From the NCBI GenBank assembly GCA_964019335.1, contig OZ025729.1, forward strand, positions 62,001-126,000: a stretch of 64,000 nucleotides of DNA, read 5' to 3'. The notes beneath the pieces are model-generated. The model was not told where the DNA came from, did not search any database, and worked only from the letters and a program-made list of their open reading frames with translations. This document shows, one piece after another, positions 6,682 to 60,583 of this stretch; position 1 is the first letter of the stretch; each line of letters begins with the position of its first letter. The DNA is from Diplonema japonicum. Lineage: Eukaryota > Protista > Euglenozoa: Diplonemea. Both the position numbers and the translations under genes were made by a program.

Positions 6682-9600
6682 ATGACACGAGATGGCAGTT
6701 TTGTTATGAAGACCACCGTCCTTCTCAGCAGTGTGCACCTCGTGGCATCGCTGCCCACAACGTACCAGGAGGCCCCTACAGAGGCAGACCACACAAACTG
6801 TTTTGATAACCAAGGGTGGTGCAAGTGCACTGCAGGCAAGATGATGACTGGTTTGTTCAAAAGTTCTTGCAATGATCTGTGGTGTCTTGAGAAGTACCAC
6901 TGTGCAAGGCCCGCCGGCAGCACAGGTGTCGGGAGCTGTGTCAGTGTCAGCGTGGATGCTCCTCTCAACAGTGGGAACAACAAAGCTGCCTGCCCGGCTG
7001 GCAAGATGCTCAACGGCATCTACAGAGCTGTTTGCAACGCCCTCTCTTGCATCGACCAGTTCGAGTGCTGTGAGTTCACCCACCCTGACGGTGTGTACAG
7101 CTATGGGGCCGACCAGACTACAAACTGGGTCACCTGCATGGACCCTTGGCACACATGGTGCGATGTCCCCACCAACACCTATATGTCTGGCTTTCACAGA
7201 GCTAGTAGCTCCAATGACCTTAGGGCCATCGACTACGGAGAATACAGGCAACTCACCTTCACTCCCAACCCCACACTCGCACCAGCAACACCAGCCCCCG
7301 CTACGCCGGCTCCTGCAACACCTGCACCTGCAACGCCGGCACCCGCAACACCTGCACCAGCAACACCTGCTCCTGCTACACCTGCACCAGTTACACCTGC
7401 CCCTGCTACACCTGCCCCTGCTACGCCGGCTCCTGCTACACCTGCACCAGCAACGCCGGCTCCTGCAACACCAGCCCCGGCTACACCTGCACCAGTTACA
7501 CCTGCCCCTGCTACAACATCTCCTGCGACACTTGCTCCTGATACACCTGCACCAGCAACGCCGGCTCCTGCAACACCAGTCCCGGCTACACCTGCCCCTG
7601 CTACGCCGGCTCCTGCGACACCTGCACCAGCAACTCCAGCACCGGCAACACCTGCTCCTGCTACAACTGCACCAGCAACGTCAGCTCCTGCAACACCAGC
7701 CCCTGCTACACCTGCCCCTGCTACACCTGCCCCTGCAACGCCGGCTCCTGCGACACCTGCACCAGCAACAGCAGCACCGGCAACACCTGCTCCTGCAACA
7801 CCTGCACCAGTTACACCTGCCCCTGCTACGCCGGCTCCTGCTACACCTGCACCAGCAACGCCGGCTCCTGCAACACCAGCCCCGGCTACACCTGCACCAG
7901 TTACACCTGCCCCTGCTACACCAGCTCCTGCGACACCTGCTCCTGCTACACCTGCACCAGCAACGCCGGCTCCTGCAACACCAGCCCCAGCTACACCTGC
8001 CCCTGCTACGCCGGCTCCTGCGACACCTGCACCAGCAACAGCAGCACCGGCAACACCAGCTCCTGCTACAACTGCACCAGCAACGTCAGCTCCTGCAACA
8101 CCATCCCCTGCTACATCAGCACCGGCAACACCGGCTCCTGCGACACCTGCACCAGCAACAGCGTCACCAGCAACCCAAGCACCTGATACACAGGCACCAA
8201 GCACCCCTGCCCCTGACACACAACCGCCAAGCACCTCAGTGCCGAGCACCTCAGCCCCTGCAACGGCGGCACCAGCAACACCGAGCCCTGACACCTTGGT
8301 TCCTGGGGACACAGGGGCACCAGCAACACCTGCACCCGACACGGCAACACCGACCACGGCACCCGACACCCAGGCGCCTCTCACGGTCGCACCTTCAACA
8401 CCGGCCCCCGATACACAAGCACCGTCGACTCCTGCTCCTGCAACGGTGGCCCCCGACACTCCAGCTCCTGCAACCTCTGCCCCGGCGACAACCGCACCAG
8501 CGACAACCACACCGGCTACCCTCACCCCGGGCACAACCGCGGCACCTCCGACGGGATCACCTCCGACCGCTGTTCCAACAACAGCACCTGACACGGCAGC
8601 TCCTGCGACCCCTGCCCCTGCAACCTTGGCACCCGACACCCTCTCACCTGTGACCCCCTCCCCCCTCACAACGGCACCTTCAACCCTTTCCCCGGCCACA
8701 ACACCACCTCTTACTCAGGCACCCTTGACCCCCTCTCCCCTCACATTAGCCCCGACCACAACCTCACCTGCAACCCAGGCACCTTCCACCTCTTCTCCTC
8801 CCACACTGACTCCTTCAACCTTCACCTTCGCCCCTCCTCCAACCGGAGTACCTCCGACCTTCGCCCCTCCTCCAACTTTCGCCCCGGCTCTTCCTGCGAC
8901 CTCTCCTCCCACCTTCGCCCCTCCTCTCACTTTGGCCCCACCCACCACTCCAGCACCCGACACCCTCGCTCCGGCTCCTCCAACACTCTCCCCACCCACC
9001 TCTGTCCCGACCACGACCACAGCTCCTTCAACTCCAGCACCGGACACGCAAGCACCCGGGACACTGGCACCCACCGGGACAGCAACGTTTTCCCCCGCCA
9101 CGAACCTCCCGGGACCACCAGCAGGGACCTCGGAACCCGAGACAGCTGTTCGGGAGACGGCGGCACCAACCACGGCACCCAGGACCCCTGCCCCCGAGTT
9201 CGACAAGAAGGAGACGATCTCGACGATAGGCGGGGTGACCGCTGGGGCGGCCTCTCTGGGGGCGGCGGGGAGTGCGGCGGCGGCGACGCGGCTGGTGCTG
9301 ATCGCGGATGCGTGTCCGAAGAACGGGGTGAAGCGAAAGTTCCCCTTCCCGCTGCACCCCACGGGGATCTCGGTGCAGGGGAGCGAGGCGGCTGGGGCTG
9401 TGATCGGGAACTTCTCCATCGTGATCGGCTTCACGCTTCTGATGGCGGTGGCCCTCCTCATCTTCCAGAAGGCGGGGAAGCTGTGCCTCCCGGCCCTGTT
9501 CGAGGGGCTGGACACTCAGGGGTGGCTCCGCTTTCCCTCTGTCTCCCTGTTCATCTTCCAGTGGCTGTACCAGGGGACCACCCTTGGATCGATGATCCTT

Positions 9601-10554
9601 CTCATATACCCCTCTGATGCTGGGGAGGTGATTTTGGGGGTCGTCTCCCTGATCCTGTGCGTGGGGGTCCCGCTCCTGGTCTTCCGGGTGGTGTCGCGGG
9701 ATGTGGGGAAGAAGGCAGTGTACAGCATCGACACGGTGAAGAAGGGGAGGCTGTACGTGGCGCTGTGCGGGCCTGGGGAGTGGGTGTCTGTGGGGTCGGA
9801 CGTGCACTGGGTGAACAGGTTCGCGTCTGTGATGAGGTCGTACACGCAGCGGGCGGCCTGGTTCACTGTGATCGAGTTCGCAGGGTCGTTCAGCTTGGCG
9901 GCCTTGGGGACCCTGAACACGGAGTCGTGGGTTGGGTGCGGACACGTGAAGGTTGCGATGTGCATGGTGTTTGCCACGATGGCGGGGCTGGAGGGGGCCC
10001 TGTGGCCGCATGCTCGGGCGAAGGACAACATCGCAGACTTCGTTCTTCTCGGGATGCAGGGGGCCGCCTTGCTCCTCATGGCGGGTGGCTTCTACAAGGA
10101 GAAGGACATCGGGGACGACCAGCTCCACGACATTGCAGGGCTGCTCTTCCTCGTCTCGGGGATCCTCCTCCTTGTGAAGGCTGTCACCGACCTCCTCACA
10201 GAGGCTTTTGTCGTCCTCACGGGGCGCCGCAGGAGGCTTCAGGCGGATGCATGGGCAAGCGAGCAGGACAAGCTGTCGTGGGGCACCTCGTCGTTGCTCC
10301 ATGTGCAGGACCCTGAGCTTGAGATGTCGATGCTCCCTGAGAAAGGGGATACCATGTCCATGACCCACCCTGCGACGGCTTCAGATGTGACTGCTTCTGT
10401 GACTGCACCAACAAGGACAACAGCAACGTCATTCTCCTTTCACACCAACGGGTCCATGAGGTCCACTGGGTCTGCTAGCTTACCGAACATGCGGAGGTAT
10501 CAGTCATCAGCCAGGAGAGAGCTGTTACTTGCGAAAGCTAACGTTGAAATATAG
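6682..10554 (+). CDS. Receptor family member R1: signal peptide, Cys-rich three-repeat head, long PAT(P)A mucin stalk, about 7-TM module, cytoplasmic tail
   Basis: Uninterrupted ORF; first ATG 6682 (alternative 6706). The head has three C..G..M.G..R/K..C..L.C repeats. Stalk about 7261-9195. Seven to eight hydrophobic segments follow PAPEFDKKE, with LHPTG..GAVIGN and GEWV..RF...Y...WF..IE motifs reminiscent of the kinetoplastid DGF-1 C-terminal module. Confidence 0.85.
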   Translation: MTRDGSFVMKTTVLLSSVHLVASLPTTYQEAPTEADHTNCFDNQGWCKCTAGKMMTGLFKSSCNDLWCLEKYHCARPAGSTGVGSCVSVSVDAPLNSGNNKAACPAGKMLNGIYRAVCNALSCIDQFECCEFTHPDGVYSYGADQTTNWVTCMDPWHTWCDVPTNTYMSGFHRASSSNDLRAIDYGEYRQLTFTPNPTLAPATPAPATPAPATPAPATPAPATPAPATPAPATPAPVTPAPATPAPATPAPATPAPATPAPATPAPATPAPVTPAPATTSPATLAPDTPAPATPAPATPVPATPAPATPAPATPAPATPAPATPAPATTAPATSAPATPAPATPAPATPAPATPAPATPAPATAAPATPAPATPAPVTPAPATPAPATPAPATPAPATPAPATPAPVTPAPATPAPATPAPATPAPATPAPATPAPATPAPATPAPATPAPATAAPATPAPATTAPATSAPATPSPATSAPATPAPATPAPATASPATQAPDTQAPSTPAPDTQPPSTSVPSTSAPATAAPATPSPDTLVPGDTGAPATPAPDTATPTTAPDTQAPLTVAPSTPAPDTQAPSTPAPATVAPDTPAPATSAPATTAPATTTPATLTPGTTAAPPTGSPPTAVPTTAPDTAAPATPAPATLAPDTLSPVTPSPLTTAPSTLSPATTPPLTQAPLTPSPLTLAPTTTSPATQAPSTSSPPTLTPSTFTFAPPPTGVPPTFAPPPTFAPALPATSPPTFAPPLTLAPPTTPAPDTLAPAPPTLSPPTSVPTTTTAPSTPAPDTQAPGTLAPTGTATFSPATNLPGPPAGTSEPETAVRETAAPTTAPRTPAPEFDKKETISTIGGVTAGAASLGAAGSAAAATRLVLIADACPKNGVKRKFPFPLHPTGISVQGSEAAGAVIGNFSIVIGFTLLMAVALLIFQKAGKLCLPALFEGLDTQGWLRFPSVSLFIFQWLYQGTTLGSMILLIYPSDAGEVILGVVSLILCVGVPLLVFRVVSRDVGKKAVYSIDTVKKGRLYVALCGPGEWVSVGSDVHWVNRFASVMRSYTQRAAWFTVIEFAGSFSLAALGTLNTESWVGCGHVKVAMCMVFATMAGLEGALWPHARAKDNIADFVLLGMQGAALLLMAGGFYKEKDIGDDQLHDIAGLLFLVSGILLLVKAVTDLLTEAFVVLTGRRRRLQADAWASEQDKLSWGTSSLLHVQDPELEMSMLPEKGDTMSMTHPATASDVTASVTAPTRTTATSFSFHTNGSMRSTGSASLPNMRRYQSSARRELLLAKANVEI
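7261..9195 (+). repeat. Coding 15-nt minisatellite (pentapeptide PATPA/PDTQA/PPTLA) forming the R1 mucin stalk
   Basis: Degenerate tandem units such as CCTGCAACACCAGCA/CCTGCTACACCTGCC. Equivalent arrays lie at about 18931-20643, 24157-25575, 30730-32500, 38680-38980, 52500-53263 and 58503-59266. Confidence 0.9.
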
Positions 10555-10792
10555 TGAATGGTTCGTTACTGATGACTTTTGAAGGACCTTTGTGCATACT
10601 AAAAACAAAACAAAAAAGTTTTTTTAAAGGAAGGAAGGGGGGGGGGGGGGATGAAGAAAAAAAAAGAAGAAAAAAAAACGCACACCAATTTTCTTTAAGG
10701 GGCGTTTCTTTGTTCGGGTGTAATATTTTCTTTGCCCTTTTGTTCAAAGTAAGATATACACGATTTCTATATTAAAAAAAAGGGTGTGTGTG

Positions 10793-18357: not shown

Positions 18358-21300
18358 ATGGCGTCCATAAAGACCGCCGTTCTTCTCAGCAGTGTGCACC
18401 TCGTGGCATCGCTGCCCACAACGTACCAGGAGGCCCCTACAGAGGCAGACCACGCAAACTGTTTTGATAACCAAGGGTGGTGCAAGTGCACTGCAGGCAA
18501 GATGATGACTGGTTTGTTCAAAAGTTCTTGCAATGATCTGTGGTGTCTTGAGAAGTACCACTGTGCAAGGCCCGCCGGCAGCACAGGTGTCGGGAGCTGT
18601 GTCAGTGTCAGCGTGGATGCTCCTCTCAACAGTGGGAACAACAAAGCTGCCTGCCCGGCTGGCAAGATGCTCAACGGCATCTACAGAGCCGCCTGCAACT
18701 CCCTCTCTTGCATCGACCAGTTCGAGTGCTGTGAGTTCACCCACCCCACTGGCATATACATCTATGGGGTCGATGAGGCAGCCAACTGGGTCACCTGCAT
18801 GGACCCTTGGCACACATGGTGCGATGTCCCCACCAACACCTATATGTCTGGCTTTCACAGGTCCAGCACTTCAAACAATCTGCAGGCAGTTGACTGGGGG
18901 GCATATAGGCAGCTCATCTTTACCCTACCGACATCTGCACCGGCAACACCAGCCCCGACTACACCAGCACCAGCAACGCCAGCCCCTGCTACAGTTGCAC
19001 CCGCGACACCAGCCCCAAATACGCCAGTTCCTGACACACCCGTACCTTCTACACCTGCACCTGCCACACAAGCCCCCGACACACCAGCTCCTGACACATC
19101 TGCACCAGCAACATCAGCCCCTGCTACACCAGCTCCTGATACAATAGCCCCAGATACACAGGCACCACGCACGTCAGCACCCAGCACAATAGCCCCTGCC
19201 ACACCTGCACCCAATACACAGGCACCAAGTACTCTTGCCCCTAACACCCCAGCTCCTGCAACACTTGCACCTGCTACATCAGCCCCGGTAACTCCAGCTC
19301 CTGCAACACCTGCACCAGCAACGCCAGCCCCTGCTACACCAGCTCCTGCAACACCTTCACCCAATACACCAGCCCCTGCTACATCAGCCCCGGCAACAGT
19401 GTCACCAGCAACCCAAGCACCTGATACACAGGCACCAAGAACATCAGCACCCAGTACCTCAGCCCCTGCAACACCTGCACCCAATACACAGGCACCAAGT
19501 ACACCTGCCCCTGCAACGTCAGCCCCTGCCACACCTGCACCAGCTACACTATCCCCTGCAACAGACGCACCCGCAACACCAGCTCCTGCGACACCATCCC
19601 CTGCAACAGCGTCACCAGCAACCCAAGCACCTGATACACAGGCACCAAGCACCCCTGCCCCTGACACACAACCGCCAAGCACCTCAGTGCCGAGCACCTC
19701 AGCCCCTGCAACGGCGGCACCAGCAACACCGAGCCCTGACACCTTGGTTCCTGGGGACACAGGGGCACCAGCAACACCTGCACCCGACACGGCAACACCG
19801 ACCACGGCACCCGACACCCAGGCGCCTCTCACGGTCGCACCTTCAACACCGGCCCCCGATACACAAGCACCGTCGACTCCTGCTCCTGCAACGGTGGCCC
19901 CCGACACTCCAGCTCCTGCAACCTCTGCCCCGGCGACAACCGCACCAGCGACAACCACACCGGCTACCCTCACCCCGGGCACAACCGCGGCACCTCCGAC
20001 GGGATCACCTCCGACCGCTGTTCCAACAACAGCACCTGACACGGCAGCTCCTGCGACCCCTGCCCCTGCAACCTTGGCACCCGACACCCTCTCACCTGTG
20101 ACCCCCTCCCCCCTCACAACGGCACCTTCAACCCTTTCCCCGGCCACAACACCACCTCTTACTCAGGCACCCTTGACCCCCTCTCCCCTCACATTAGCCC
20201 CGACCACAACCTCACCTGCAACCCAGGCACCTTCCACCTCTTCTCCTCCCACACTGACTCCTTCAACCTTCACCTTCGCCCCTCCTCCAACCGGAGTACC
20301 TCCGACCTTCGCCCCTCCTCCAACTTTCGCCCCGGCTCTTCCTGCGACCTCTCCTCCCACCTTCGCCCCTCCTCTCACTTTGGCCCCACCCACCACTCCA
20401 GCACCCGACACCCTCGCTCCGGCTCCTCCAACACTCTCCCCACCCACCTCTGTCCCGACCACGACCACAGCTCCTTCAACTCCAGCACCGGACACGCAAG
20501 CACCCGGGACACTGGCACCCACCGGGACAGCAACGTTTTCCCCCGCCACGAACCTCCCGGGACCACCAGCAGGGACCTCGGAACCCGAGACAGCTGTTCG
20601 GGAGACGGCGGCACCAACCACGGCACCCAGGACCCCTGCCCCCGAGTTCGACAAGAAGGAGACGATCTCGACGATAGGCGGGGTGACCGCTGGGGCGGCC
20701 TCTCTGGGGGCGGCGGGGAGTGCGGCGGCGGCGACGCGGCTGGTGCTGATCGCGGATGCGTGTCCGAAGAACGGGGTGAAGCGAAAGTTCCCCTTCCCGC
20801 TGCACCCCACGGGGATCTCGGTGCAGGGGAGCGAGGCGGCTGGGGCTGTGATCGGGAACTTCTCCATCGTGATCGGCTTCACGCTTCTGATGGCGGTGGC
20901 CCTCCTCATCTTCCAGAAGGCGGGGAAGCTGTGCCTCCCGGCCCTGTTCGAGGGGCTGGACACTCAGGGGTGGCTCCGCTTTCCCTCTGTCTCCCTGTTC
21001 ATCTTCCAGTGGCTGTACCAGGGGACCACCCTTGGATCGATGATCCTTCTCATATACCCCTCTGATGCTGGGGAGGTGATTTTGGGGGTCGTCTCCCTGA
21101 TCCTGTGCGTGGGGGTCCCGCTCCTGGTCTTCCGGGTGGTGTCGCGGGATGTGGGGAAGAAGGCAGTGTACAGCATCGACACGGTGAAGAAGGGGAGGCT
21201 GTACGTGGCGCTGTGCGGGCCTGGGGAGTGGGTGTCTGTGGGGTCGGACGTGCACTGGGTGAACAGGTTCGCGTCTGTGATGAGGTCGTACACGCAGCGG

Positions 21301-22002
21301 GCGGCCTGGTTCACTGTGATCGAGTTCGCAGGGTCGTTCAGCTTGGCGGCCTTGGGGACCCTGAACACGGAGTCGTGGGTTGGGTGCGGACACGTGAAGG
21401 TTGCGATGTGCATGGTGTTTGCCACGATGGCGGGGCTGGAGGGGGCCCTGTGGCCGCATGCTCGGGCGAAGGACAACATCGCAGACTTCGTTCTTCTCGG
21501 GATGCAGGGGGCCGCCTTGCTCCTCATGGCGGGTGGCTTCTACAAGGAGAAGGACATCGGGGACGACCAGCTCCACGACATTGCAGGGCTGCTCTTCCTC
21601 GTCTCGGGGATCCTCCTCCTTGTGAAGGCTGTCACCGACCTCCTCACAGAGGCTTTTGTCGTCCTCACGGGGCGCCGCAGGAGGCTTCAGGCGGATGCAT
21701 GGGCAAGCGAGCAGGACAAGCTGTCGTGGGGCACCTCGTCGTTGCTCCATGTGCAGGACCCTGAGCTTGAGATGTCGATGCTCCCTGAGAAAGGGGATAC
21801 CATGTCCATGACCCACCCTGCGACGGCTTCAGATGTGACTGCTTCTGTGACTGCACCAACAAGGACAACAGCAACGTCATTCTCCTTTCACACCAACGGG
21901 TCCATGAGGTCCACTGGGTCTGCAGCCTTACCGAACTTAAGAAGGCATCAGTCGTTCGCAAGAAAAGAGGTGCTTCTTAAAAAAGCAAGTTTGCAGATTT
22001 AG
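18358..22002 (+). CDS. Receptor family member R2 (head / mucin stalk / about 7-TM / tail)
   Basis: Paralogue of R1; first in-frame ATG 18358. Appears identical to R1 from about 19603 to about 21923 (offset 11448), with a different head third repeat, proximal stalk and final about 25 codons. Confidence 0.85.
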   Translation: MASIKTAVLLSSVHLVASLPTTYQEAPTEADHANCFDNQGWCKCTAGKMMTGLFKSSCNDLWCLEKYHCARPAGSTGVGSCVSVSVDAPLNSGNNKAACPAGKMLNGIYRAACNSLSCIDQFECCEFTHPTGIYIYGVDEAANWVTCMDPWHTWCDVPTNTYMSGFHRSSTSNNLQAVDWGAYRQLIFTLPTSAPATPAPTTPAPATPAPATVAPATPAPNTPVPDTPVPSTPAPATQAPDTPAPDTSAPATSAPATPAPDTIAPDTQAPRTSAPSTIAPATPAPNTQAPSTLAPNTPAPATLAPATSAPVTPAPATPAPATPAPATPAPATPSPNTPAPATSAPATVSPATQAPDTQAPRTSAPSTSAPATPAPNTQAPSTPAPATSAPATPAPATLSPATDAPATPAPATPSPATASPATQAPDTQAPSTPAPDTQPPSTSVPSTSAPATAAPATPSPDTLVPGDTGAPATPAPDTATPTTAPDTQAPLTVAPSTPAPDTQAPSTPAPATVAPDTPAPATSAPATTAPATTTPATLTPGTTAAPPTGSPPTAVPTTAPDTAAPATPAPATLAPDTLSPVTPSPLTTAPSTLSPATTPPLTQAPLTPSPLTLAPTTTSPATQAPSTSSPPTLTPSTFTFAPPPTGVPPTFAPPPTFAPALPATSPPTFAPPLTLAPPTTPAPDTLAPAPPTLSPPTSVPTTTTAPSTPAPDTQAPGTLAPTGTATFSPATNLPGPPAGTSEPETAVRETAAPTTAPRTPAPEFDKKETISTIGGVTAGAASLGAAGSAAAATRLVLIADACPKNGVKRKFPFPLHPTGISVQGSEAAGAVIGNFSIVIGFTLLMAVALLIFQKAGKLCLPALFEGLDTQGWLRFPSVSLFIFQWLYQGTTLGSMILLIYPSDAGEVILGVVSLILCVGVPLLVFRVVSRDVGKKAVYSIDTVKKGRLYVALCGPGEWVSVGSDVHWVNRFASVMRSYTQRAAWFTVIEFAGSFSLAALGTLNTESWVGCGHVKVAMCMVFATMAGLEGALWPHARAKDNIADFVLLGMQGAALLLMAGGFYKEKDIGDDQLHDIAGLLFLVSGILLLVKAVTDLLTEAFVVLTGRRRRLQADAWASEQDKLSWGTSSLLHVQDPELEMSMLPEKGDTMSMTHPATASDVTASVTAPTRTTATSFSFHTNGSMRSTGSAALPNLRRHQSFARKEVLLKKASLQI

Positions 22003-23600: not shown

Positions 23601-26600
23601 ATGGTGCTCCTAGCAGTGCTCTTCCTCCTCCTCTGTGTGCATTCCGTGATGTCGTTCCCCACGAGTTACCAAGGTACCCCTACAACGGCTGACCACACGA
23701 GCTGCTTTGACAACCAAGGCTGGTGCAAGTGCTCAGCAGGCAAGATGATGACAGGGCTCAACAGAGGTAGTTGCAGCGAACTTTACTGCATTGAGAAATT
23801 CCACTGTGCCAAGCCCGCCGGTAGCACGGGCAAAGGGAACTGTGTGGAAGTCAATGTTGACAGTGCACTCAACAACCCAAACGGGAAAGGTGTCTGCCCG
23901 GCAGGCAAGCTACTCAACGGCATCTACAGAGCCTCCTGCGATAGCCTCGCGTGCATCGATAGGATCGAGTGCTGCACGTTCCAACGCTCTGGCGGCTACA
24001 ACTATGGTAACGACAAGAACGCCAACTGGGTCACCTGCTTCGACAACTCTGGGTGGTGCGATGTCCCTACCAACACGTACATGGCGGGGCTGCGCAGGGG
24101 GAGCGGCTCCACCATCAATGCACTCGATTATGCGATTTACAGAAAACTCTTCGTCCCCGACACACCTGCTCCTGATACACCAGCTCCTGCAACACCTTCT
24201 CCTAATACGCCATCTCCTGCAACACCAGCTCCTGCCACATCAGCCCCGGCAACAGTGTCACCAGCAACCCAAGCACCTGATACACAGGCACCAAGCACGT
24301 CAGCACCCAGTACCTCAGCCCCTGCGACAGACGCACCAAGTACTCCTGCTCCTTCTACATCAGCTCCTGCAACACCATCCCCTGCAACACCTGCACCGGC
24401 AACGTCAGCCCCTGCAACACCAGCTCCAGCTACACCTGCACCCAATACACCATCCCCTGCTACACCTGCACCAGCTACACTATCCCCTGCAACAGACGCA
24501 CCCGCAACACCAGCTCCTGCGACACCATCCCCTGCAACAGCGTCACCAGCAACCCAAGCACCTGATACACAGGCACCAAGCACCCCTGCCCCTGACACAC
24601 AACCGCCAAGCACCTCAGTGCCGAGCACCTCAGCCCCTGCAACGGCGGCACCAGCAACACCGAGCCCTGACACCTTGGTTCCTGGGGACACAGGGGCACC
24701 AGCAACACCTGCACCCGACACGGCAACACCGACCACGGCACCCGACACCCAGGCGCCTCTCACGGTCGCACCTTCAACACCGGCCCCCGATACACAAGCA
24801 CCGTCGACTCCTGCTCCTGCAACGGTGGCCCCCGACACTCCAGCTCCTGCAACCTCTGCCCCGGCGACAACCGCACCAGCGACAACCACACCGGCTACCC
24901 TCACCCCGGGCACAACCGCGGCACCTCCGACGGGATCACCTCCGACCGCTGTTCCAACAACAGCACCTGACACGGCAGCTCCTGCGACCCCTGCCCCTGC
25001 AACCTTGGCACCCGACACCCTCTCACCTGTGACCCCCTCCCCCCTCACAACGGCACCTTCAACCCTTTCCCCGGCCACAACACCACCTCTTACTCAGGCA
25101 CCCTTGACCCCCTCTCCCCTCACATTAGCCCCGACCACAACCTCACCTGCAACCCAGGCACCTTCCACCTCTTCTCCTCCCACACTGACTCCTTCAACCT
25201 TCACCTTCGCCCCTCCTCCAACCGGAGTACCTCCGACCTTCGCCCCTCCTCCAACTTTCGCCCCGGCTCTTCCTGCGACCTCTCCTCCCACCTTCGCCCC
25301 TCCTCTCACTTTGGCCCCACCCACCACTCCAGCACCCGACACCCTCGCCCCGGCTCCTCCAACACTCTCCCCACCCACCTCTGTCCCGACCACGACCACA
25401 GCTCCTTCAACTCCAGCACCGGACACGCAAGCACCCGGGACACTGGCACCCACCGGGACAGCAACGTTTTCCCCCGCCACGAACCTCCCGGGACCACCAG
25501 CAGGGACCTCGGAACCCGAGACAGCTGTTCGGGAGACGGCGGCACCAACCACGGCACCCAGGACCCCTGCCCCCGAGTTCGACAAGAAGGAGACGATCTC
25601 GACGATAGGCGGGGTGACCGCTGGGGCGGCCTCTCTGGGGGCGGCGGGGAGTGCGGCGGCGGCGACGCGGCTGGTGCTGATCGCGGATGCGTGTCCGAAG
25701 AACGGGGTGAAGCGAAAGTTCCCCTTCCCGCTGCACCCCACGGGGATCTCGGTGCAGGGGAGCGAGGCGGCTGGGGCTGTGATCGGGAACTTCTCCATCG
25801 TGATCGGCTTCACGCTTCTGATGGCGGTGGCCCTCCTCATCTTCCAGAAGGCGGGGAAGCTGTGCCTCCCGGCCCTGTTCGAGGGGCTGGACACTCAGGG
25901 GTGGCTCCGCTTTCCCTCTGTCTCCCTGTTCATCTTCCAGTGGCTGTACCAGGGGACCACCCTTGGATCGATGATCCTTCTCATATACCCCTCTGATGCT
26001 GGGGAGGTGATTTTGGGGGTCGTCTCCCTGATCCTGTGCGTGGGGGTCCCGCTCCTGGTCTTCCGGGTGGTGTCGCGGGATGTGGGGAAGAAGGCAGTGT
26101 ACAGCATCGACACGGTGAAGAAGGGGAGGCTGTACGTGGCGCTGTGCGGGCCTGGGGAGTGGGTGTCTGTGGGGTCGGACGTGCACTGGGTGAACAGGTT
26201 CGCGTCTGTGATGAGGTCGTACACGCAGCGGGCGGCCTGGTTCACTGTGATCGAGTTCGCAGGGTCGTTCAGCTTGGCGGCCTTGGGGACCCTGAACACG
26301 GAGTCGTGGGTTGGGTGCGGACACGTGAAGGTTGCGATGTGCATGGTGTTTGCCACGATGGCGGGGCTGGAGGGGGCCCTGTGGCCGCATGCTCGGGCGA
26401 AGGACAACATCGCAGACTTCGTTCTTCTCGGGATGCAGGGGGCCGCCTTGCTCCTCATGGCGGGTGGCTTCTACAAGGAGAAGGACATCGGGGACGACCA
26501 GCTCCACGACATCGCAGGGCTGCTCTTCCTCGTCTCGGGGGTCTTCCTCCTTGTGAAGGCTGTCACCGACCTCCTCACAGAGGCTTTTGTCGTCCTCACG

Positions 26601-35760: not shown

Positions 35761-35763
35761 TTA

Positions 35764-37349: not shown

Positions 37350-38071
37350 TATTTCAAAAAAATGATTTTATAGCAAAATGCAACTTGTGCCCTTCGCAGC
37401 TTTCTAAAAACCTTTTTTTGCTCGTGCGAACAGCAAAGACATATAGTTCTATACAGGGAAAATTTCCTGTGAAGATGGTGCGCCTTCAAGCTGTTGCTAG
37501 CACTGGTTGCCGTCATGCTGGCTTTGGACCCCCCCGTGTATGCATACAAGGGCTGTTTTATCGACAAAAGTAATACAAATGCTGGCAGCGTGATTTTTTA
37601 GACCAACCTTTTTTTTTTTTTTTTTTTTTTTTTTGTAATCAAGTAGACAGTGCTTGTGCAGAGCGTCACCGACACTGGCCTCCTTTATCTCACATTTTTT
37701 CCTCCTCCCCCCGCCAAAAGCCCCCCCCCCAAAAAAAAACGGAACGGGGACAGAGTGATTAGTTTCTTTCTCTTTTTCTTTCTACCGAAGGGTTGGGGGT
37801 TTTTTTTTTCTTTTTCCTTTTCTCCGTTGGCGAGATTTAGTTGCCATCGCCGGCAGTGCAGCCGAACAGAGATGATCTCCATTCGTCCAGATACGTATTG
37901 CTGTAGAGACACTGACGTCCCGTTATTTGCCCTCTTTAGTATTCCCTCCCTCCCTCCCACCTCTCTGTTCTCTTACATTTTCACGAGGCTGCTATAGCGG
38001 TCGAAAAAAAAAAAAAGAAAGAGCAGAAGAAGTTTCCTTTTTTAAAGCACACCCAGGTTGAGGGAGCGGGG

Positions 38072-39293: not shown

Positions 39294-39338
<45 letters not shown>

Positions 39339-40961: not shown

Positions 40962-40993
<32 letters not shown>

Positions 40994-41308
40994 GACGGGG
41001 GCCTTCTTCTCGAGATGAAGCAGAATGAGCAGCCTGGCAAAGCATGCTTCAGTGAAGCAGCAGGGGACCTGACAACGCCTTTCACACAGCTGGGCGACCT
41101 GGATGGATTCCTTCCTGTGAGCAACCCCTTACACCACTGGGAGGGGCAGGATGATGGGAATGGGAATGGGAGTGAGAGTGAGGTAGACATCCCCCCTTCC
41201 CCCATGAGCGACTACTCAAGGTACCGCCCACCTTACCAGCCACACTTTGGGATGGCTTGGAAGGGTGTCGTGATGAGAGAAAAAGAAAAGTCTCAGCAGT
41301 TTACTTGA
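38072..41308 (+). CDS. Receptor family member R5: chimeric, with R6/R7-type head, short stalk, extra Cys-rich ectodomain and a divergent multi-TM module
   Basis: The 5' leader and head are closely similar to 51908/57908. After about 38980 the DNA is unrelated, but the protein keeps module motifs (C...NPFQLRIG..GAVVGG, SEWV, Y.GY, RPY). CAA-encoded poly-N/poly-Q tracts are present. Confidence 0.85.
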
Positions 41309-41464
41309 TTGAAATAGAAAAAAAGAATATAAACCTTCCTTCCCCCCATTCCCCCTCCACATGATGCGAATCGATCTTCCGTTTCCTCAATTGTTCAAAA
41401 GAAACTTGGAAACGCGTTAACCTGCCAACATAGCCCTAGGCATGCCTGCGTGAAGAAGAATATA

Positions 41465-43070
41465 CTGTAAAACGAAAAACTCCCGGACGGAAAAATATCC
41501 GAGTTTTTTTGGCGTCCGGGAGTTTTTCCGTCCGGGAATTTTTTTTAGGTAAGGCCGTCAGGGGGCCTGGTCCACTACCACCTACATACTGGCCTGGGCT
41601 GCAAACGGCAACCGCGCGAAGAAATCCCCAGGGTTCCCTTTCTGCATCTTTGTCCTCCCTTGCTGCCCCTGAGGCAATCAGCTTGTCGAGCCTTCGTGTG
41701 GCCTACTACCTTTCTTAATAGATGCTTTACAGCTGCGTTCAACCCAATATCCATCGGTTGAACCATGTAGGTGAGCCCAGGGGGACAAAAGCAATGTGCA
41801 CGTTTGCGCCTGCGAACAACTCTACGAACCCATAGGCATAGGTCGTGTGAGAGTTGTGGTCGCCGACAAGCAGCAGAACCGGCCCGTTCGGCAAAACCAT
41901 GGGAATCGATGATTTATAGCAAAAAAGGAAGAAACAGTTCTGTAACCCAGATACCGAGTATCATAATTAGCCCAATGATTGGGCGATGCCGTTAGGCTCC
42001 ATTCGATGGGCAGGTGCTTGACCTGGGCACGGATAATCCCTGCCGGTTGCGTTTCCGCTTTGCCTTTGTATTTAAGTTGCGGATGCAACTCATCCAGCCA
42101 AGGAAACAGCCAGCCACGGACTTTTACGACCTTAGCACCCCTTTTCGTTTTAGTTTTTAACTCCGTATTCCAGACCAATTCCCTTACTTTATGGGTGTCG
42201 ATTATGGACCTATATTCCATGGTGAAACAGCGTGCCTTCTCGTTGTCTTTCTCGTTTCCGGGCTTTCCGGAGGTGGCTCGCGGCTTTTGTCTTTCTTGCT
42301 GCAAAGTTTTGTCAGCCTAGCCAGTGGAAAAGGACAGTGCCCCACCAAAGTCTACCAGGTCTGTCTTTCGGGCTGGATTGGCGCGCAGCAGCCCTTCTGC
42401 ATAGGTGCATATTTGTTGTGCTGGGATAGGCTCGCCAAGCCCGTTTTACCTATCGACTCAAGCAAAAACCTTTCAGCCCCCGAAGGATGCTAAATCCCGT
42501 ATTGGGCGATACACTGCTATCACGGCGTCGCGGCGGCCAGGGTGTGGTAGGGTGGAATAGCAACGTCCAGTATTTCCGTCTGGAAGAAACTGGGGGCTCT
42601 GTTGAACCTGTTGCTGCCGTCTTCTGACCGAGGCAGAGGCCGCCAAGCTGCTTTCGGGGGTCGTACTGGCCTTCTCGGCCCGGTGTAAGGAGTTTATCTC
42701 CTCCACCTCTCGGGTGAGCTGGCCGGGGGTGTCAGCACCAAAGTTGGGCCCCTCACAAGCCAGCTGCTCAACGTGCCTTGGGTAGTCGAACTGGTTAATT
42801 TGACGAAAGAAGTACGGGTTTATGAGAAGTTAAAGATCCCGTGGGTGCTGTTTGTTGGTGCATTGAAAGGGGAAGAAAAATTCAAACTGCCACGCAGGGT
42901 AAACATTTTGGCCCTGCACAAGGAATAAAGCCCTTCCAGGCAAACGTGGTGGGAGCTGCTACCCCCCCTTAAGTAAAAAGACTTCTTCCCAGAAAAACTC
43001 CTGGACGGAAAAATGTCCGGGTTTTTTTGGTGTCCGGGAGTTTTTCTGTCCGACATTATTCGTTTTACAG
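41465..43070 (-). mobile_element. pogo-like DNA transposon, degenerate (copy B, inverted relative to copy A)
   Basis: Full-length reverse-complement match to 35764-37349 with small indels. TA on both sides and the same QPMD remnant. Confidence 0.88.
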
Positions 43071-43165
43071 TAGCTATTTTTTTCCCTTGGGACAAACTGG
43101 AAAAATAGATTTTCCCTACCCCCCACCTATCCCCTTGTTCTGATAAGTAAAATAAACAGTCTCGA

Positions 43166-51673: not shown

Positions 51674-51907
51674 CCCCCCCCCCCCTCCCCTTCTTTTTTC
51701 AGTTTTCTTCTAGAATTGGCTAGTTTCAAACGAGGGAGGATTTGTTTTACCCCTAAAGATTGCTTTCTGCATACAGCACAACACAAACCCATTTGTGGGT
51801 CTTGCGGAGCACCTGCCTCTCTTCTTATTATCCCCTCTCTTTTTTTTCCCCCTTTCCTTTTGTTTTTCCACAAACTGTAAAGCACACCCAGGTTGAGGGA
51901 GCGGGGG

Positions 51908-54580
51908 ATGCGGCACGGAGCACATGGTTATGTCTCACAAGCTGCCGTCCTTCTCAGCAGTGTGCACCTCGTGGCATCGCTGCCCACAACGTACCAGGAG
52001 GCCCCTGTAGTGGTTGACCAATATGACTGTCTTGATAACCAAGGGTGGTGCAGGTGCACTACGGGGAAGATGCTGACAGGGTTGTACAAAAGTGGCTGCG
52101 CACAACTCTATTGCATTGACAACTACCGCTGTGCGAGGCCTGTCGGCAGCACAGGTGTCGGCGACTGTGTCACCATCAGTGTTGATACACCCCTCGGCAC
52201 GGGGACAAATGGAAAAGCCGTCTGCCCAGCAGGAAAGATGCTCAACGGCATCTACAGAGCCACCTGCGACGACCTCTCTTGCATTGACCAGTTCGAGTGC
52301 TGTGAGTTCACCCACCCTGACGGCACCTATGAGTACGGCGTTGAAGTGTCTGCTGACTGGGACACCTGCTTCGGTTCGTCTACAGGGTGGTGTGATGTCC
52401 CTACCGACACCTACATGGTAGGCATAAGTCGAGGTGCTACCCCCAACGACCTGACGGCCATTGACCTCGGGTGGTACAGGGAGCTGGTCTTTATCCCCAG
52501 AACAGATGCGCCAGACACCCCTGCACCTGACACGCCGGCACCACCTACACCTGCACCTCCTACGCTTGCGCCTCCTACTGGTGCCCCACCCACTTCTTCA
52601 CCTCCCACACAGGCACCTCCTACTCCTGCGCCTCCTACTCCTGCACCTCCCACTTCTGCGCCTCCTACTCAGGCACCTGACACCCCTGCACCTCCAACCC
52701 CTGCACCTCCCACTTCTGCGCCTCCGACAGCAGCACCTCCAACCCCTGCACCTCCCACTCAGGCGCCTCCGACAGCGGCACCTCCCACTCCTGCACCTCC
52801 CACTCAGGCACCTCCCACTCCCGCACCTCCCACTCCTGCACCTCCTACTCTTGCACCTCCCACTCCTGCGCCTCCTACTCTTGCACCTCCCACTCCTGCA
52901 CCTCCTACTCTTGCACCTCCGACTCCTGCGCCCCCTACTTCGGCACCGCCGACCCCCGCGCCCCCTACTCCCGCACCTCCAACACAGGCCCCTCCGACTC
53001 CTGCCCCACCAACATGGGCACCTCTCACACCTGCGCCACCGACACCCGCACCGGACACGCCTGCCCCTGCAACACCCGCGCCAAAGACACCAGCTCCAGG
53101 AACGCCTTCCCCGCCCACGCCTGCACCCGCGACACTTGCTCCCCTGACACCGGCACCCCCTACACCAGCACCCGCGACGACTGCACCGCCCACCTTCCCA
53201 CCTCCCACGGCAGCCCCCGACACGGCTGCGGCACCAACCACGGCACCCGGGACCCCTGCCCCCGAGTTCGACAAGAAGGAGACGATCTCGACGATAGGCG
53301 GGGTGACCGCTGGGGCGGCCTCTCTGGGGGCGGCGGGGAGTGCGGCGGCGGCGACGCGGCTGGTGCTGATCGCGGATGCGTGTCCGAAGAACGGGGTGAA
53401 GCGAAAGTTCCCCTTCCCGCTGCACCCTACGGGGATCTCGATACAGGGGAGCGAGGCGGCGGGGGCTGTGATCGGAAACTTCTCCATCGCGATCGGCTTC
53501 ACGCTCCTGATGAGGGTAGCTCTGGAAGTGTTCCGCAAGGGGGGCAAGCAGTGCTTTCCGGCAATGTTCGAGGGGCTGGACACTCAGGGGTGGCTCCGCT
53601 TCCCCTCTGTCTCCCTGTTCATCTTCCAGTGGCTGTACCAGGGGACCACCCTTGGATCGATGATCCTTCTCATGTACCCCGGGAACGCTCTGCAGTTCAT
53701 ACTGGGCCTCGCATCTCTGGCTGTGTGCGTGGTGGTCCCGCTCCTGGTCTTCCGGGTGGTCGTGAGGGACGTGGGGAGGAAGGCAGTGTACAGCATCGAC
53801 ACGGTGAAGAAGGGGAGGCTGTACGTGGCGCTGTGCGGGCCTGGGGAGTGGGTGTCTGTGGGGTCGGACGTGCACTGGGTGAACAGGTTCGCGTCTGTGA
53901 TGAGGTCGTACACGCAGCGGGCGGCCTGGTTCACTGTGATCGAGTTTGCAGGGTCGTTCAGCTTGGCGGCCTTGGGGACCCTGAACACGGAGTCGTGGGT
54001 TGGGTGCGGACACGTGAAGGTTGCGATGTGCATGGTGTTTGCCACGATGGCGGGGCTGGAGGGGGCCTTGTGGCCGCATGCTCGGGCGAAGGACAACATC
54101 GCAGACTTCATTCTTCTCGGGACGGAGGGGGCCGCCTTGCTCCTCATGGCGGGTGGCTTCTACAAGGAGAAGGACATCGGGGACGACCAGCTCCACGACA
54201 TCGCGGAGAGGCTCTTCCTCGTCTCGGGGGTCTTCCTCCTTGTGAAGGCTGTCACCGACCTCCTCACAGAGGCCTTCATTCTTGTCACTGGCCGCAGGGC
54301 TCGCTTGCAAGCTGATGCCTGGGGCATCGGCAGGGACAAGGAAGAGGCTCTGGTTGCATGCTCGGACCTCGGGGAAGACAGCGAGCTGGAAATGTCAGCG
54401 GTTCAGGACACACAGCAGCCCACCAGCTCCGCCTCCCCGCTGTCGACCAAGCCGCACACTGGGTCCACTCCTTATTCTCTGACCGCAATCTCAAATTCAA
54501 CTGGCAACACGGCCAGCTTCAACAGCCACCAAGCAGCCGCAAAGCGTGAGCTCGCTCTCATGAAAAGCGCAAAAATATAA
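51908..54580 (+). CDS. Receptor family member R6 (head / PPT(P)A stalk / about 7-TM / tail)
   Basis: First ATG 51908. Shorter Pro-richer stalk. The TM module is identical to R1-R4 in patches. The tail ends [17 protein letters not shown]. Confidence 0.87.
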
Positions 54581-54992
54581 GAACTATCTTTTCCCTTTTC
54601 TTTCTTTCTTTCGTCCGACACCTTCGTGCCCGACAACAGAGCACAGCAACCTGCTAGGTTGCAGCACGCCCTACCCGTCGTCACCAACACCCAAGCGGAA
54701 AGAGGTAGTTCACACGGCAGGGGGTTTAAGAAGCAACCAAACTTATTCTTCGTTTCTTTCTTTTTTTTCGTTTTGGTGGATTCTATTGTCAAGACGAAAG
54801 ATGAAATGTTTCGTTTCTTCCGCCCTTTTTTTTTCTTTTTTTTTTTAAAGTATTGATAAGATAAGGATAAAGTGTATAAGCTTCTCGCGTGTGGGCACCA
54901 GAAAGAAGGGAGGGCACAAACTGGCAACCCTTTTTGTGAAGTTCCCATCGGTGTGACGAGTTCGAGAAATTCTCAGGTTGTACCATTCCCGG

Positions 54993-56731: not shown

Positions 56732-56781
<50 letters not shown>

Positions 56782-57907
56782 GAGGAGGATAATAAAAACA
56801 AAAAAAAAAAAAAAAAAAAAAAAACAAAAAACTTACTTACTTACTTACCCTCCAAAAATGAGCGGTACTTCAAAAGAAAAACTAGAGTGAATGGGTGGAA
56901 TATTTATGATTCATCATTTGCTGGTATTTACCAGGGGCAAGAAGAAAAAAGAAAAAAAAAGGGGTGCTTGTAACCCTTTCCGCACAAAGACAACCCATCG
57001 GTTCCTTTGTTCTCTTCTTCTTTCGCCAAATTTACACATTCTCTTCTTTTTTCTTTTTTTTTTTTTTTTTTTTTTTGCACAATCATCTTTGAAAAAAAAA
57101 AAAGAAAAAAAAAAAAACGGGATTTTTATCTTGACAAAAATAACTACGCCGAAATTATTAGGCAGTTTACACATTTGTTGGGTTCTGCTATTTTCTTTTT
57201 TTTTTCTCTTTTTTTTTCTCTTTTTTCTTTTCTGAAAAAGATCATTAATACCAGTGACACAGTAGCGAAACAATAAACAAAAAGGCAATAAAATCTCTTT
57301 TATTAGAGAAACTTTACTTTTAGTAAAGGCTGTGTTTTTGTTTTTTTGTTTTTTTGTTTTTTTTTTTTAGCGGGCCGTTGTTAACCACTTCGTTCCTATC
57401 ATAATGAATTTTCTTTCTTTTTTTTTGTTTTGTTTTTGTTTTGTTTTTATTTTCTGTTTTCATCGGCCATTTCTTCTTCTTTTCTAGACGGTTATATTTA
57501 CTCTGTTGTTTCGTCTCCTGCAGAATGTACATCGCCACCTGTTGTCTATGTATATCGTTATTACGAAACGAGCTCTATCTGCGGCCCAAAAGAACGATCC
57601 CCCACTTCCCCCCCCCTTCTTTTTTTTCAGTGTGTTTTTTTTTTCTTTCTTCTCGCAAACTCCGCAAACCTCGCGCGCCACCATCACCAGTAATAATTCC
57701 CTTGGCACGAAAGAAGAACGAGATTATTACTTTTTTGCGACATTTGTTTTTGTTCTTCTGGCCCTGTCTGTGGTATGAAAAAGCACAAACGAACGAATAC
57801 ATAGTAGTAAATGAGCAGCAGCGGCTGGCCAATCAAAAGTCAAAAGGGGGCGGGCCCTTTTTTTTCCCCACAAACTGTAAGGCACACCCAGGTTGAGGGA
57901 GCGGGGG

Positions 57908-60583
57908 ATGCGGCACGGAGCCCATGGTTATGTCTCACAAGCTGCCGTCCTTCTCAGCAGTGTGCACCTCGTGGCATCGCTGCCCACAACGTACCAGGAG
58001 GCCCCTGATGTGGCCGACCATTATGACTGTCTTGATAACCAAGGGTGGTGCAGGTGCACTACGGGGAAGATGCTGACAGGGTTGTACAAAGGCTACTGTG
58101 ACGATCTACATTGTCTGGAGCAGTACCACTGTGCGAGGCCTGTCGGCAGCACAGGTGTCGGGAGCTGTGTTGTCACCAGTGTTGATGCAGCCCTTAATGA
58201 CAACGGGACTGGTGGGAAAGCTGTCTGCCCAGCAGGAAAGATGCTCAACGGCATCTACAGAGCCACCTGCGACTCCCTCTCTTGCATTGACCAGTTCGAG
58301 TGCTGTGAGTTCACCCACCCTGACGGCACCTATGAGTACGGCGCTGAAGTGTCTGCTGACTGGGACACCTGCTTCGATTCGCAAGGCATATGGTGTGATG
58401 TCCCTACCGACACCTACATGGTAGGCATAAGTCGAGGTGCTACCCCCAACGACCTGACGGCCATTGACCTCGGGTGGTACAGGGAGCTGGTCTTTATCCC
58501 CAGAACAGATGCGCCAGACACCCCTGCACCTGACACGCCGGCACCACCTACACCTGCACCTCCTACGCTTGCGCCTCCTACTGGTGCCCCACCCACTTCT
58601 TCACCTCCCACACAGGCACCTCCTACTCCTGCGCCTCCTACTCCTGCACCTCCCACTTCTGCGCCTCCTACTCAGGCACCTGACACCCCTGCACCTCCAA
58701 CCCCTGCACCTCCCACTTCTGCGCCTCCGACAGCAGCACCTCCAACCCCTGCACCTCCCACTCAGGCGCCTCCGACAGCGGCACCTCCCACTCCTGCACC
58801 TCCCACTCAGGCACCTCCCACTCCCGCACCTCCCACTCCTGCACCTCCTACTCTTGCACCTCCCACTCCTGCGCCTCCTACTCTTGCACCTCCCACTCCT
58901 GCACCTCCTACTCTTGCACCTCCGACTCCTGCGCCCCCTACTTCGGCACCGCCGACCCCCGCGCCCCCTACTCCCGCACCTCCAACACAGGCCCCTCCGA
59001 CTCCTGCCCCACCAACATGGGCACCTCTCACACCTGCGCCACCGACACCCGCACCGGACACGCCTGCCCCTGCAACACCCGCGCCAAAGACACCAGCTCC
59101 AGGAACGCCTTCCCCGCCCACGCCTGCACCCGCGACACTTGCTCCCCTGACACCGGCACCCCCTACACCAGCACCCGCGACGACTGCACCGCCCACCTTC
59201 CCACCTCCCACGGCAGCCCCCGACACGGCTGCGGCACCAACCACGGCACCCGGGACCCCTGCCCCCGAGTTCGACAAGAAGGAGACGATCTCGACGATAG
59301 GCGGGGTGACCGCTGGGGCGGCCTCTCTGGGGGCGGCGGGGAGTGCGGCGGCGGCGACGCGGCTGGTGCTGATCGCGGATGCGTGTCCGAAGAACGGGGT
59401 GAAGCGAAAGTTCCCCTTCCCGCTGCACCCTACGGGGATCTCGATACAGGGGAGCGAGGCGGCGGGGGCTGTGATCGGAAACTTCTCCATCGCGATCGGC
59501 TTCACGCTCCTGATGAGGGTAGCTCTGGAAGTGTTCCGCAAGGGGGGCAAGCAGTGCTTTCCGGCAATGTTCGAGGGGCTGGACACTCAGGGGTGGCTCC
59601 GCTTCCCCTCTGTCTCCCTGTTCATCTTCCAGTGGCTGTACCAGGGGACCACCCTTGGATCGATGATCCTTCTCATGTACCCCGGGAACGCTCTGCAGTT
59701 CATACTGGGCCTCGCATCTCTGGCTGTGTGCGTGGTGGTCCCGCTCCTGGTCTTCCGGGTGGTCGTGAGGGACGTGGGGAGGAAGGCAGTGTACAGCATC
59801 GACACGGTGAAGAAGGGGAGGCTGTACGTGGCGCTGTGCGGGCCTGGGGAGTGGGTGTCTGTGGGGTCGGACGTGCACTGGGTGAACAGGTTCGCGTCTG
59901 TGATGAGGTCGTACACGCAGCGGGCGGCCTGGTTCACTGTGATCGAGTTTGCAGGGTCGTTCAGCTTGGCGGCCTTGGGGACCCTGAACACGGAGTCGTG
60001 GGTTGGGTGCGGACACGTGAAGGTTGCGATGTGCATGGTGTTTGCCACGATGGCGGGGCTGGAGGGGGCCTTGTGGCCGCATGCTCGGGCGAAGGACAAC
60101 ATCGCAGACTTCATTCTTCTCGGGACGGAGGGGGCCGCCTTGCTCCTCATGGCGGGTGGCTTCTACAAGGAGAAGGACATCGGGGACGACCAGCTCCACG
60201 ACATCGCGGAGAGGCTCTTCCTCGTCTCGGGGGTCTTCCTCCTTGTGAAGGCTGTCACCGACCTCCTCACAGAGGCCTTCATTCTTGTCACTGGCCGCAG
60301 GGCTCGCTTGCAAGCTGATGCCTGGGGCATCGGCAGGGACAAGGAAGAGGCTCTGGTTGCATGCTCGGACCTCGGGGAAGACAGCGAGCTGGAAATGTCA
60401 GCGGTTCAGGACACACAGCAGCCCACCAGCTCCGCCTCCCCGCTGTCGACCAAGCCGCACACTGGGTCCACTCCTTATTCTCTGACCGCAATCTCAAATT
60501 CAACTGGCAACACGGCCAGCTTCAACAGCCACCAAGCAGCCGCAAAGCGTGAGCTCGCTCTCATGAAAAGCGCAAAAATATAA
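57908..60583 (+). CDS. Receptor family member R7 (near twin of R6 with a different head)
   Basis: Appears identical to R6 from about 58391 to the stop codon plus 7 nt (offset 6003). Within the CDS, differences are confined to the head apart from one silent change in the leader. Confidence 0.87.

Follow-up and report, generated by a model that had tools for sequence, protein, structure and literature searches.

A tandem array of modular, bodonin-like genes in Diplonema japonicum with mosaic relatedness produced by recombination between paralogues

The present study concerns a 64,000-nucleotide stretch of the Diplonema japonicum genome (assembly GCA_964019335.1, contig OZ025729.1, positions 62,001 to 126,000 of the forward strand; hereafter the window, with positions counted from its first letter) and the seven long, intact open reading frames (ORFs), R1-R7, that lie on its plus strand. 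With the first in-frame (eukaryotic) ATG taken as the start, the seven genes encode proteins of 890-1300 amino acids (aa) with one common layout. All begin with a hydrophobic leader and a 165-aa cysteine-rich head, followed by a Pro/Thr-rich stalk that is encoded by tandem repeats with a base period of 15 nucleotides (nt). In R1-R4, R6 and R7, the stalk joins directly to a 353-aa transmembrane (TM) block running from EFDKK to QADAW, and then to a tail of 85-100 aa; R5 differs in having a Cys- and Asn-rich middle region and a far more divergent membrane block. The results described below showed that each of these modules has its own pattern of relatedness among the seven genes, as had been proposed in a previous reading of the same DNA made without database searches (the sequence-only reading). 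The genes and their modules are as follows.

6682-10554, plus strand: R1, with head 6682-7254, stalk 7255-9195, TM module 9196-10254 and tail 10255-10554.
18358-22002, plus strand: R2, with head 18358-18915, stalk 18916-20643, TM module 20644-21702 and tail 21703-22002.
23601-26888, plus strand: R3, with head 23601-24149, stalk 24150-25574, TM module 25575-26633 and tail 26634-26888.
30160-33834, plus strand: R4, with head 30160-30723, stalk 30724-32499, TM module 32500-33558 and tail 33559-33834.
38072-41308, plus strand: R5, a chimeric gene, with an R6/R7-type 5' part (38043-38845) and a body (38847-41282).
51908-54580, plus strand: R6, with head 51908-52486, PPTxA stalk 52487-53263, TM module 53264-54322 and tail 54323-54580.
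57908-60583, plus strand: R7, with head 57908-58489, stalk 58490-59266, TM module 59267-60325 and tail 60326-60583.

Identity was determined in DNA for each module separately, together with a 60-nt sliding comparison anchored on the TM block. First, the TM block is 99.5-100% identical among R1-R4 and 100% identical between R6 and R7, and the two groups share 92.3-92.6% identity, so that R6 and R7 do carry most of the R1-R4 TM module, as the sequence-only reading had stated. The heads show 70-94% identity, that of R3 being the most divergent at approximately 70% to every other head, and the tails show 61-70%, except for R1/R2 (92%) and for R6 and R7, which are identical. The 1-kb flanks, upstream and downstream, are unalignable in every pair, R6/R7 included. 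Second, the tract common to R1-R4, which comprises the distal stalk and the TM block, has sharp borders. It begins near position 8180 of R1, at the end of the 15-nt array (7279-8185/8215), and stops at position 10254, directly after QADAW; past this point the identity of R1 to R3 and R4 drops to approximately 55% within one sliding window, and the identity of R1 to R2 continues to approximately 10477 before divergence. These are the two places, in the stalk repeats and right after QADAW, where breakpoints had been predicted. The tracts and the stalk arrays are located as follows.

8180-10254, plus strand: homogenised tract in R1 (distal stalk and TM block, 2.07 kb), with 99.5-100% DNA identity to R2-R4.
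19628-21702 (R2), 24559-26633 (R3) and 31484-33558 (R4): counterparts of this tract, with positions derived by offset from a gap-free alignment.
7279-8215, plus strand: proximal stalk tandem array of R1, composed of ATPAP units with the 15-nt base period; the homogenised tract has its 5' boundary at the array end.
18946-19667, 30742-31503, 52516-53068 and 58519-59071: comparable stalk arrays.

Third, the contrast between modules is also observed at synonymous sites. Using Nei-Gojobori estimates, the synonymous divergence (dS) among R1-R4 is 0.25-1.2 in the heads and 0-0.007 in the TM block (0-2 synonymous differences per ~270 synonymous sites), and the tails are saturated; measured in this way, the contrast between modules is independent of protein constraint. 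Purifying selection alone, under which the TM block would be identical by constraint while heads and tails drift freely, agrees with the many TM-module residues that are invariant across the family. However, the synonymous sites of the R1-R4 block are identical as well, against a dS of approximately 1 in the heads, and the repetitive, unconstrained distal stalk shares this identity; there is next to no chance that this explanation is correct. Recombination was indicated by the pairwise homoplasy index (PHI) test (0/2000 permutations) and by a GENECONV-style analysis of the longest identical run over polymorphic sites (0/2000 permutations for 13 of the 15 pairs). Between the TM blocks of R1-4 and R6/7, synonymous and amino-acid differences cluster together in the same patches (0/5000 permutations), a pattern that a patchwork of converted and unconverted tracts would give. 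Similarity between R6 and R7 is limited to 51856-54592 versus 57856-60594. The two genes are identical from the stalk through the stop codon, and all their differences lie in four short head patches (52008-52387 versus 58008-58390) with a ratio of nonsynonymous to synonymous divergence (dN/dS, also a Nei-Gojobori estimate) of 0.70, the next 2.2 kb being identical. At these sites R6 mostly agrees with R5, and the states of R7 are partly common to R1/R2/R4 and partly unique. The idea that the private head patches of R7 are plain copies of R1/R2/R4 states was rejected on account of this mixture of shared and unique states. Taken together, the module identities, dS values and permutation results identified recombination between paralogues, and not selection at the protein level, as the source of the mosaic relatedness.

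The fifth gene of the array joins a head and a body of different origin. R5 is 92.4% identical in DNA to R6 over 38043-38845, starting 29 nt upstream of the ATG, and its body (38847-41282, comprising distal stalk, Cys-rich middle region, TM module and tail) is approximately 90% identical in DNA, and 88% in protein, to two genes on another contig, C69 (in this and all other genome searches, 62,535,345 bases in 132 sequences were covered). The junction, 38845/38847, lies within the stalk, and the TM module of R5 is only 26% identical to that of R1. R5 is thus a true head/body chimera, and the earlier description of an R6/R7-type head on a different TM module was accurate. The two R5-like genes on C69 have a wholly different head, designated B, which consists of approximately three copies of a ~110-aa repeat without Pfam match, and the head B of the C69 R5-like gene is 84-95% identical in DNA to the head B of its neighbours. 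In other words, the odd-bodied gene carries the local head in both arrays, the R6/R7 head (designated A) in R5 and head B on C69. In addition, at ~54.3-54.9 kb of C69, a few hundred bases upstream of a head-B gene start, there is a frameshifted, internally deleted R6/7-type head that keeps the signal peptide, the first and the last repeat and a short PPT stalk. A segmental duplication of ~44 kb on C69 contains it in either copy, and it looks like the fossil of a head replacement.

An assembly artefact, in which the identical blocks and the chimera would result from collapsed or mis-joined repeats, was already raised in the sequence-only reading and has to be weighed here, since four copies with near-perfect identity over 2 kb are of a kind that confuses assemblers and the read-level check covers the R5 junction only. 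Short-read contigs from three studies span this junction (38751-39006) with zero mismatch and at the same single-copy-like depth as other R5-specific pieces, indicating that the junction is no product of assembly. All runs behind these contigs share one organism label and may derive from one strain, and they therefore bear on the correctness of the assembly and not on population variation. The YPF1604 assembly of this species, which is the likely source of the sequence (62.30 Mb; 121 scaffolds and 11 mitochondrial contigs) was generated with hifiasm from 102x high-fidelity (HiFi) reads (7.93 Gb in 840,000 reads of ~9.4 kb each), with a quality value (QV) of 59.4 (PMC13598402). No identical tract reaches ~9 kb, the length of these reads, nor do most of the genes as a whole, which makes collapse unlikely. 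Moreover, a few differences are private to single copies, and every copy is set in unique flanks and has a head and a tail of its own, in frame. An artefact of this kind is therefore considered extremely unlikely. R5 is also flanked by two copies of a dispersed repeat in opposite orientation.

35762-37355, plus strand: left copy of a 1.6-kb dispersed repeat flanking R5, with ~32-nt terminal inverted repeats and very high read depth.
41458-43072, minus strand: second copy of this repeat, on the right and inverted, sharing 95% identity with the left one.

The genome contains 30 or more copies of this element that are nearly full-length, with 86-91% identity, and the two copies at R5 (95%) are nearest to each other among the copies listed. 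This arrangement suggests either a local inverted duplication or a role of the repeats in bringing the R5 body into the array. In-frame poly-Asn and poly-Gln runs, whose lengths vary between the R5 and C69 copies, were also observed in the middle region and in a membrane-module loop of R5 (39290-39335 and ~40270-40330) and its C69 relatives.

With respect to the heads and tails, two claims of the sequence-only reading had to be revised. First, the "four different heads" of R1-R4 are one homologous 165-aa domain with 61-88% protein identity and 12-13 conserved cysteines. The model of this domain, with a predicted local distance difference test (pLDDT) score of 91.6, is all-beta with three internal repeats. 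Its fold matches are weak (Z<=5) and include Vip3A domains (Z 5.0), the PCSK9 C-terminal domain, MABP and jacalin-type lectins, in a three-fold, beta-prism-like arrangement, and a language-model-based feature search in the Atlas returned DERM (dermatopontin) clusters (0.92-0.93, with 200-208 shared features) at a low recognition score. The model is consistent with a beta-prism-like, possibly dermatopontin-like, head that is probably a binding or lectin domain. Second, the "three different tails", which had been proposed as interchangeable signalling tails, are one homologous, Ser/Thr-rich tail throughout R1-R7, in which the motifs ELEMSML, SFSF and HQSAARRELL..VEI are conserved, as is the C-terminal end. 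The tail ends (e.g. 10465-10551, 26800-26885 and 54500-54577) have the basic motif HQSxARRELLxxKxx(V/L)(E/Q)(I/V)-COOH, similar endings being present in C69 and C47 paralogues, and this motif could be a trafficking or partner-binding signal. Concerning selection, head dN/dS is 0.18-0.37 in most pairs and 0.60-0.70 among R5/R6/R7, and exceeds 1 in none. This result shows that the heads are mainly under purifying selection and that positive selection is not demonstrated. The variable head positions showed no significant enrichment outside the beta strands (p=0.13).

The genes of the window belong to a large family. A profile of the R1 TM module gave 93 matches in the genome, corresponding to at least 85 loci when loci in pieces are allowed for, and many of these loci form tandem clusters on C69, C103, C7 and C37; head domain A was found at approximately 20 places. 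On the contig of the window itself (C82), a head-A ORF of 381 aa was observed ~7 kb past the window end (C82:133237-133725), as was a minus-strand TM-module gene ~45 kb before the window (C82:16063-17157) with 53% identity to the R1 module, and the array is consequently larger than the seven genes of the window. Among the loci that are readable in the genome, the TM module stands behind at least six head types, each connected through a Pro/Thr stalk. These are type A (the window), type B (C69), type C, two other small Cys-rich domains and a domain that is LamG-like by eye only; type C is a propeller-like repeat that resembles, by eye, the LVIVD head of a homologue (P0004). Homologues elsewhere have CUB, PAN or LVIVD heads. 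In a quick tree of 33 TM modules rooted on the R5-type bodies, the head labels were mostly clustered and required 7 changes versus a minimum of 5, and heads A and B were each found on both deep lineages, a placement forced by the starred branches. In public data, 590 cluster representatives match the TM profile at E<=0.001, and the named matches are all from diplonemids: Diplonema papillatum DIPPA_33505, DIPPA_33516 and DIPPA_33523, which lie on one contig, and a record with the prefix "Rhum_", interpreted as Rhynchopus humris. In EukProt, one Trinity ORF (P0001) matches a head-A member on C47 with 100% identity, indicating that at least this relative is transcribed. A search with the head in a set of 5.8 billion proteins gave no match among proteins of 490-1560 aa, and sequence profiles of the head and the TM module found none in the PDB.

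These data bear on the main proposal of the sequence-only reading, namely a combinatorial locus dedicated to receptor diversification, in which selection would favour new pairings of recognition domain and signalling tail, as in contingency or antigenic-variation systems. Its description of the locus as modular and recombining is confirmed, the chimera R5 is intact, the heads are the most divergent coding part (R6 and R7 differ in head patches only), and many head types are found genome-wide on the same TM module. However, the net effect of the exchanges is that neighbours are homogenised, not that new combinations arise, and the odd-bodied gene carries the local head in both arrays. The tails are all of one type, dN/dS gives no pair of heads above 1, head variability is not enriched outside the beta strands, and on the TM tree no more than two head changes are needed beyond the minimum. 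Ectopic gene conversion of the ordinary kind fits the pattern, and a dedicated diversification locus appears improbable.

The TM module was modelled from 46 sequences using AlphaFold2, with a pLDDT of 89.8 and a predicted template modelling (pTM) score of 0.87. In the model, seven long helices are preceded by two short ones at the N-terminus, and a small beta insert is located behind the third helix. In the sequence, basic residues cluster behind TM3 and TM7, in agreement with a topology in which the N-terminus is outside and the C-terminus inside; the tail would then be cytoplasmic. The Pro/Thr-rich stalk is presumably O-glycosylated. The sequence-only reading had noted that this layout resembles adhesion G-protein-coupled receptors (GPCRs). 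In a receptor of this kind, the head would bind the ligand and the seven-helix (7TM) region would transmit the binding to a G protein or a similar signalling route, and animal adhesion GPCRs indeed share the succession of ligand-binding head, mucin-like stalk, seven TM helices and cytoplasmic tail; GPCR chains are also among the weak fold matches. The likeness is of overall layout only. No GPS/GAIN domain was found with Pfam in R1, R3, R5 and R6, as that reading had already remarked, nor was there a match to 7tm_1, 7tm_2 or 7tm_3 at E<=1 or a class-B 7TM signature. Foldseek found no solved relative of the TM model (best E 0.077, TM-score <=0.25 including the GPCR rows), and neither did an exhaustive VIA search, with a best Z of 7.0 for Hrd1 and of ~5.0-5.5 for GPCR-like chains, which is under the tool's own uninformative level for helical bundles; with both tools, the structural matches of head and TM module remained at background level. 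The sequence links lead instead to DGF-1_C and PF06011, and we consider a GPCR-like receptor very unlikely.

With regard to these links, a language-model search pointed to DGF-1_C (PF11040) and to the fungal "TRP" family PF06011, and a Pfam scan for DGF-1_C matched 1 of the 46 aligned TM modules (E 2e-4). In the genome, PF11040 was detected above its cut-off of 27.3 bits at C48:318243 (42.2 bits), C10:172038, C49:159390 and C7:776517, and PF06011 passed its own cut-off at further loci, among them C7:603221 (35.8 bits) and C16:431477 (30.7 bits). The majority of the positive loci are paralogues of the R1 module (C48, E 3.4e-56; C16, 4e-92; C7:602879, 6.5e-41). The resemblance to the DGF-1 C-terminal module that the sequence-only reading had noted is thereby supported through R1-module paralogues, R1-R7 themselves scoring below the cut-off. 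PF06011 also reaches R5-type bodies (the R5 module itself has E 0.35), and D. papillatum DIPPA_17572 scores 26.1 bits; this similarity is distant and partial, covering profile positions ~270-415 in the C-terminal helices. Transitive homology through the paralogues would place the TM module in a DGF-1_C/PF06011 (fungal Flc "TRP-like") superfamily, and the module may pass ions, as has been proposed for the fungal relatives.

Herein, we propose that R1-R7, as a tandem array, belong to a large family of euglenozoan surface glycoproteins that are bodonin-like, type-I and multi-pass, the modules of which have been reshaped by gene conversion between neighbours, an account that we regard as probable. 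Ectopic gene conversion or unequal exchange between neighbours is an ordinary process that would maintain identity across distal stalk and TM block in R1-R4 and over almost the whole length of R6/R7. It would also have caused identical stretches to alternate with diverged ones when the TM blocks of R1-4 and R6/7 are compared, and it would have placed the local head on R5, a gene with a deeply divergent body. The tracts would begin within the stalk or some tens of bases 5' of the ATG, and would end where homology fails, namely inside the stalk repeats of low complexity or where the tail, which evolves fast, sets in after QADAW. The 15-nt Pro/Thr repeats are common to otherwise unrelated members, and the stalk could thus serve as a joint at which heads and bodies are re-paired. 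The main outcome would be homogenisation within the array, and the occasional new pair of head and body a by-product. By analogy with related families, we infer that the proteins may act as surface adhesins or as sensors of prey or substrate.

Several results weigh against parts of this proposal. In protein trees of the head and the TM module, including the seven genes and four outgroups, the topologies for R1-R4/R6/R7 showed no significant incongruence, owing to the poor resolution of the head tree, and the evidence for these six genes is discordant divergence, not discordant topology. No Pfam family was detected at E<=1 in the whole proteins of R1, R3, R5 and R6, and among the 46 TM modules none was above cut-off for R1-R7, so that the link of the TM module to its proposed superfamily is not a direct one. 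For the head, a Pfam hmmscan of 16 heads likewise left R1-R7 without a family above cut-off and gave no DERM (PF14704) match at E<=10, and dermatopontin entries were absent from the PDB searches.

A broader form of this idea can also be formulated, although we regard it as rather unlikely. The stalk repeats might be a family-wide joint by which any head, whether lectin-like, LVIVD propeller, CUB, PAN or another, can be combined with any DGF-1_C/Flc-type module, the modules might be ligand- or force-gated and ion-conducting, and the repertoire might be the ancestor of bodonin and DGF-1, with a distant counterpart in the Flc proteins of fungi. If this is true, diplonemids would own a large, evolvable repertoire of adhesion-gated channels. 

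The placement of a bodonin/DGF-1-type membrane module in diplonemids suggests that this module would predate the kinetoplastids, and the tie to fungal PF06011 points to ion flux as a function that can be tested in the enigmatic DGF-1 family. The two paralogous arrays, each with a divergent member bearing the head of its neighbours and joined to it within a linker of low complexity, represent a natural experiment in domain shuffling. In addition, module-specific relatedness in the tandem arrays of this genome is explained more simply by segmental gene conversion than by purpose-built diversification.

Two further genes lie upstream of R1 in the window. The gene at 2333-4345 encodes a putative mannosyltransferase (PF11051, E 2.8e-14), in which fibronectin type II is matched weakly, and a vasohibin-like gene (PF14822, E 1e-22) is located at 5455-6366. 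The position of a glycosyltransferase next to an array of mucin-stalk genes could be either coincidental or meaningful. No match was obtained when the whole window was scanned for Rfam families and tRNAs.

The array can be compared with several known systems. In trypanosomatid tandem arrays, concerted evolution proceeds by gene conversion of coding regions, which remain identical in whole or in part, flanks diverge, and the tracts are bounded by loss of homology. The R1-R7 array differs in two respects: its tracts cover only some modules of each gene, and one tract crosses, through the shared stalk repeats, between genes whose bodies are 26% identical. The fungal PF06011 proteins Flc1 and TrpR have been described as putative channels for calcium or as regulators of its homeostasis (PMC9600462, PMC8618638). 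Like R1-R7, they have an N-terminal domain that is extracellular or lumenal, followed by a multi-pass module and by a tail in the cytosol, and R1- and R5-type paralogues score above or near the PF06011 cut-off; however, R1-R7 have no TRP_N domain, the relationship is distant and partial, and channel activity is itself only putative in fungi. In Trypanosoma cruzi DGF-1, seven to nine C-terminal TM helices follow a large extracellular region, and an origin from distinct modules, one extracellular and one membrane-bound, has been proposed (bioRxiv 10.64898/2026.07.27.741050). The same preprint reported hat-TM modules in bodonids and no match in D. papillatum (10.64898/2026.07.27.741050), whereas homologues of the present TM module do exist in that species (DIPPA_33505, DIPPA_33516 and DIPPA_33523). 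As discussed above, the PF11040 cut-off is exceeded by paralogues of the R1 TM module in this genome. In contrast, the seven tandem beta-helix "rib" modules of DGF-1 are absent (no pectin-lyase or PbH1 Pfam match), and no hat domain was identified in R1-4, R6 and R7. DGF-1 is approximately 3400 aa long, far beyond the length of R1-R7, which also fall below the Pfam DGF-1_C model.

The closest likeness is to the bodonins of Bodo saltans, which, in the passages of PMC4728078 that describe them, consist of a variable extracellular domain, approximately seven TM helices like those of DGF-1 and an intracellular domain, number 394 canonical copies and have a proposed role in adhesion. Compared by this published description, the R1-R7 family is likewise multi-copy, with a Ser/Thr-rich variable extracellular domain, a TM domain of ~7 helices, an intracellular domain and varied heads on one module. 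It differs in that the host is a diplonemid and not a kinetoplastid, and in that the heads are small, Cys-rich, three-repeat beta domains on a stalk of Pro/Thr five-residue repeats. Furthermore, array-local gene conversion with a head swap, as observed in R1-R7, was not found in the bodonin passages of PMC4728078. The array appears to be a new diplonemid member of the known bodonin/DGF-1 kind, with clear linker-mediated head exchange.

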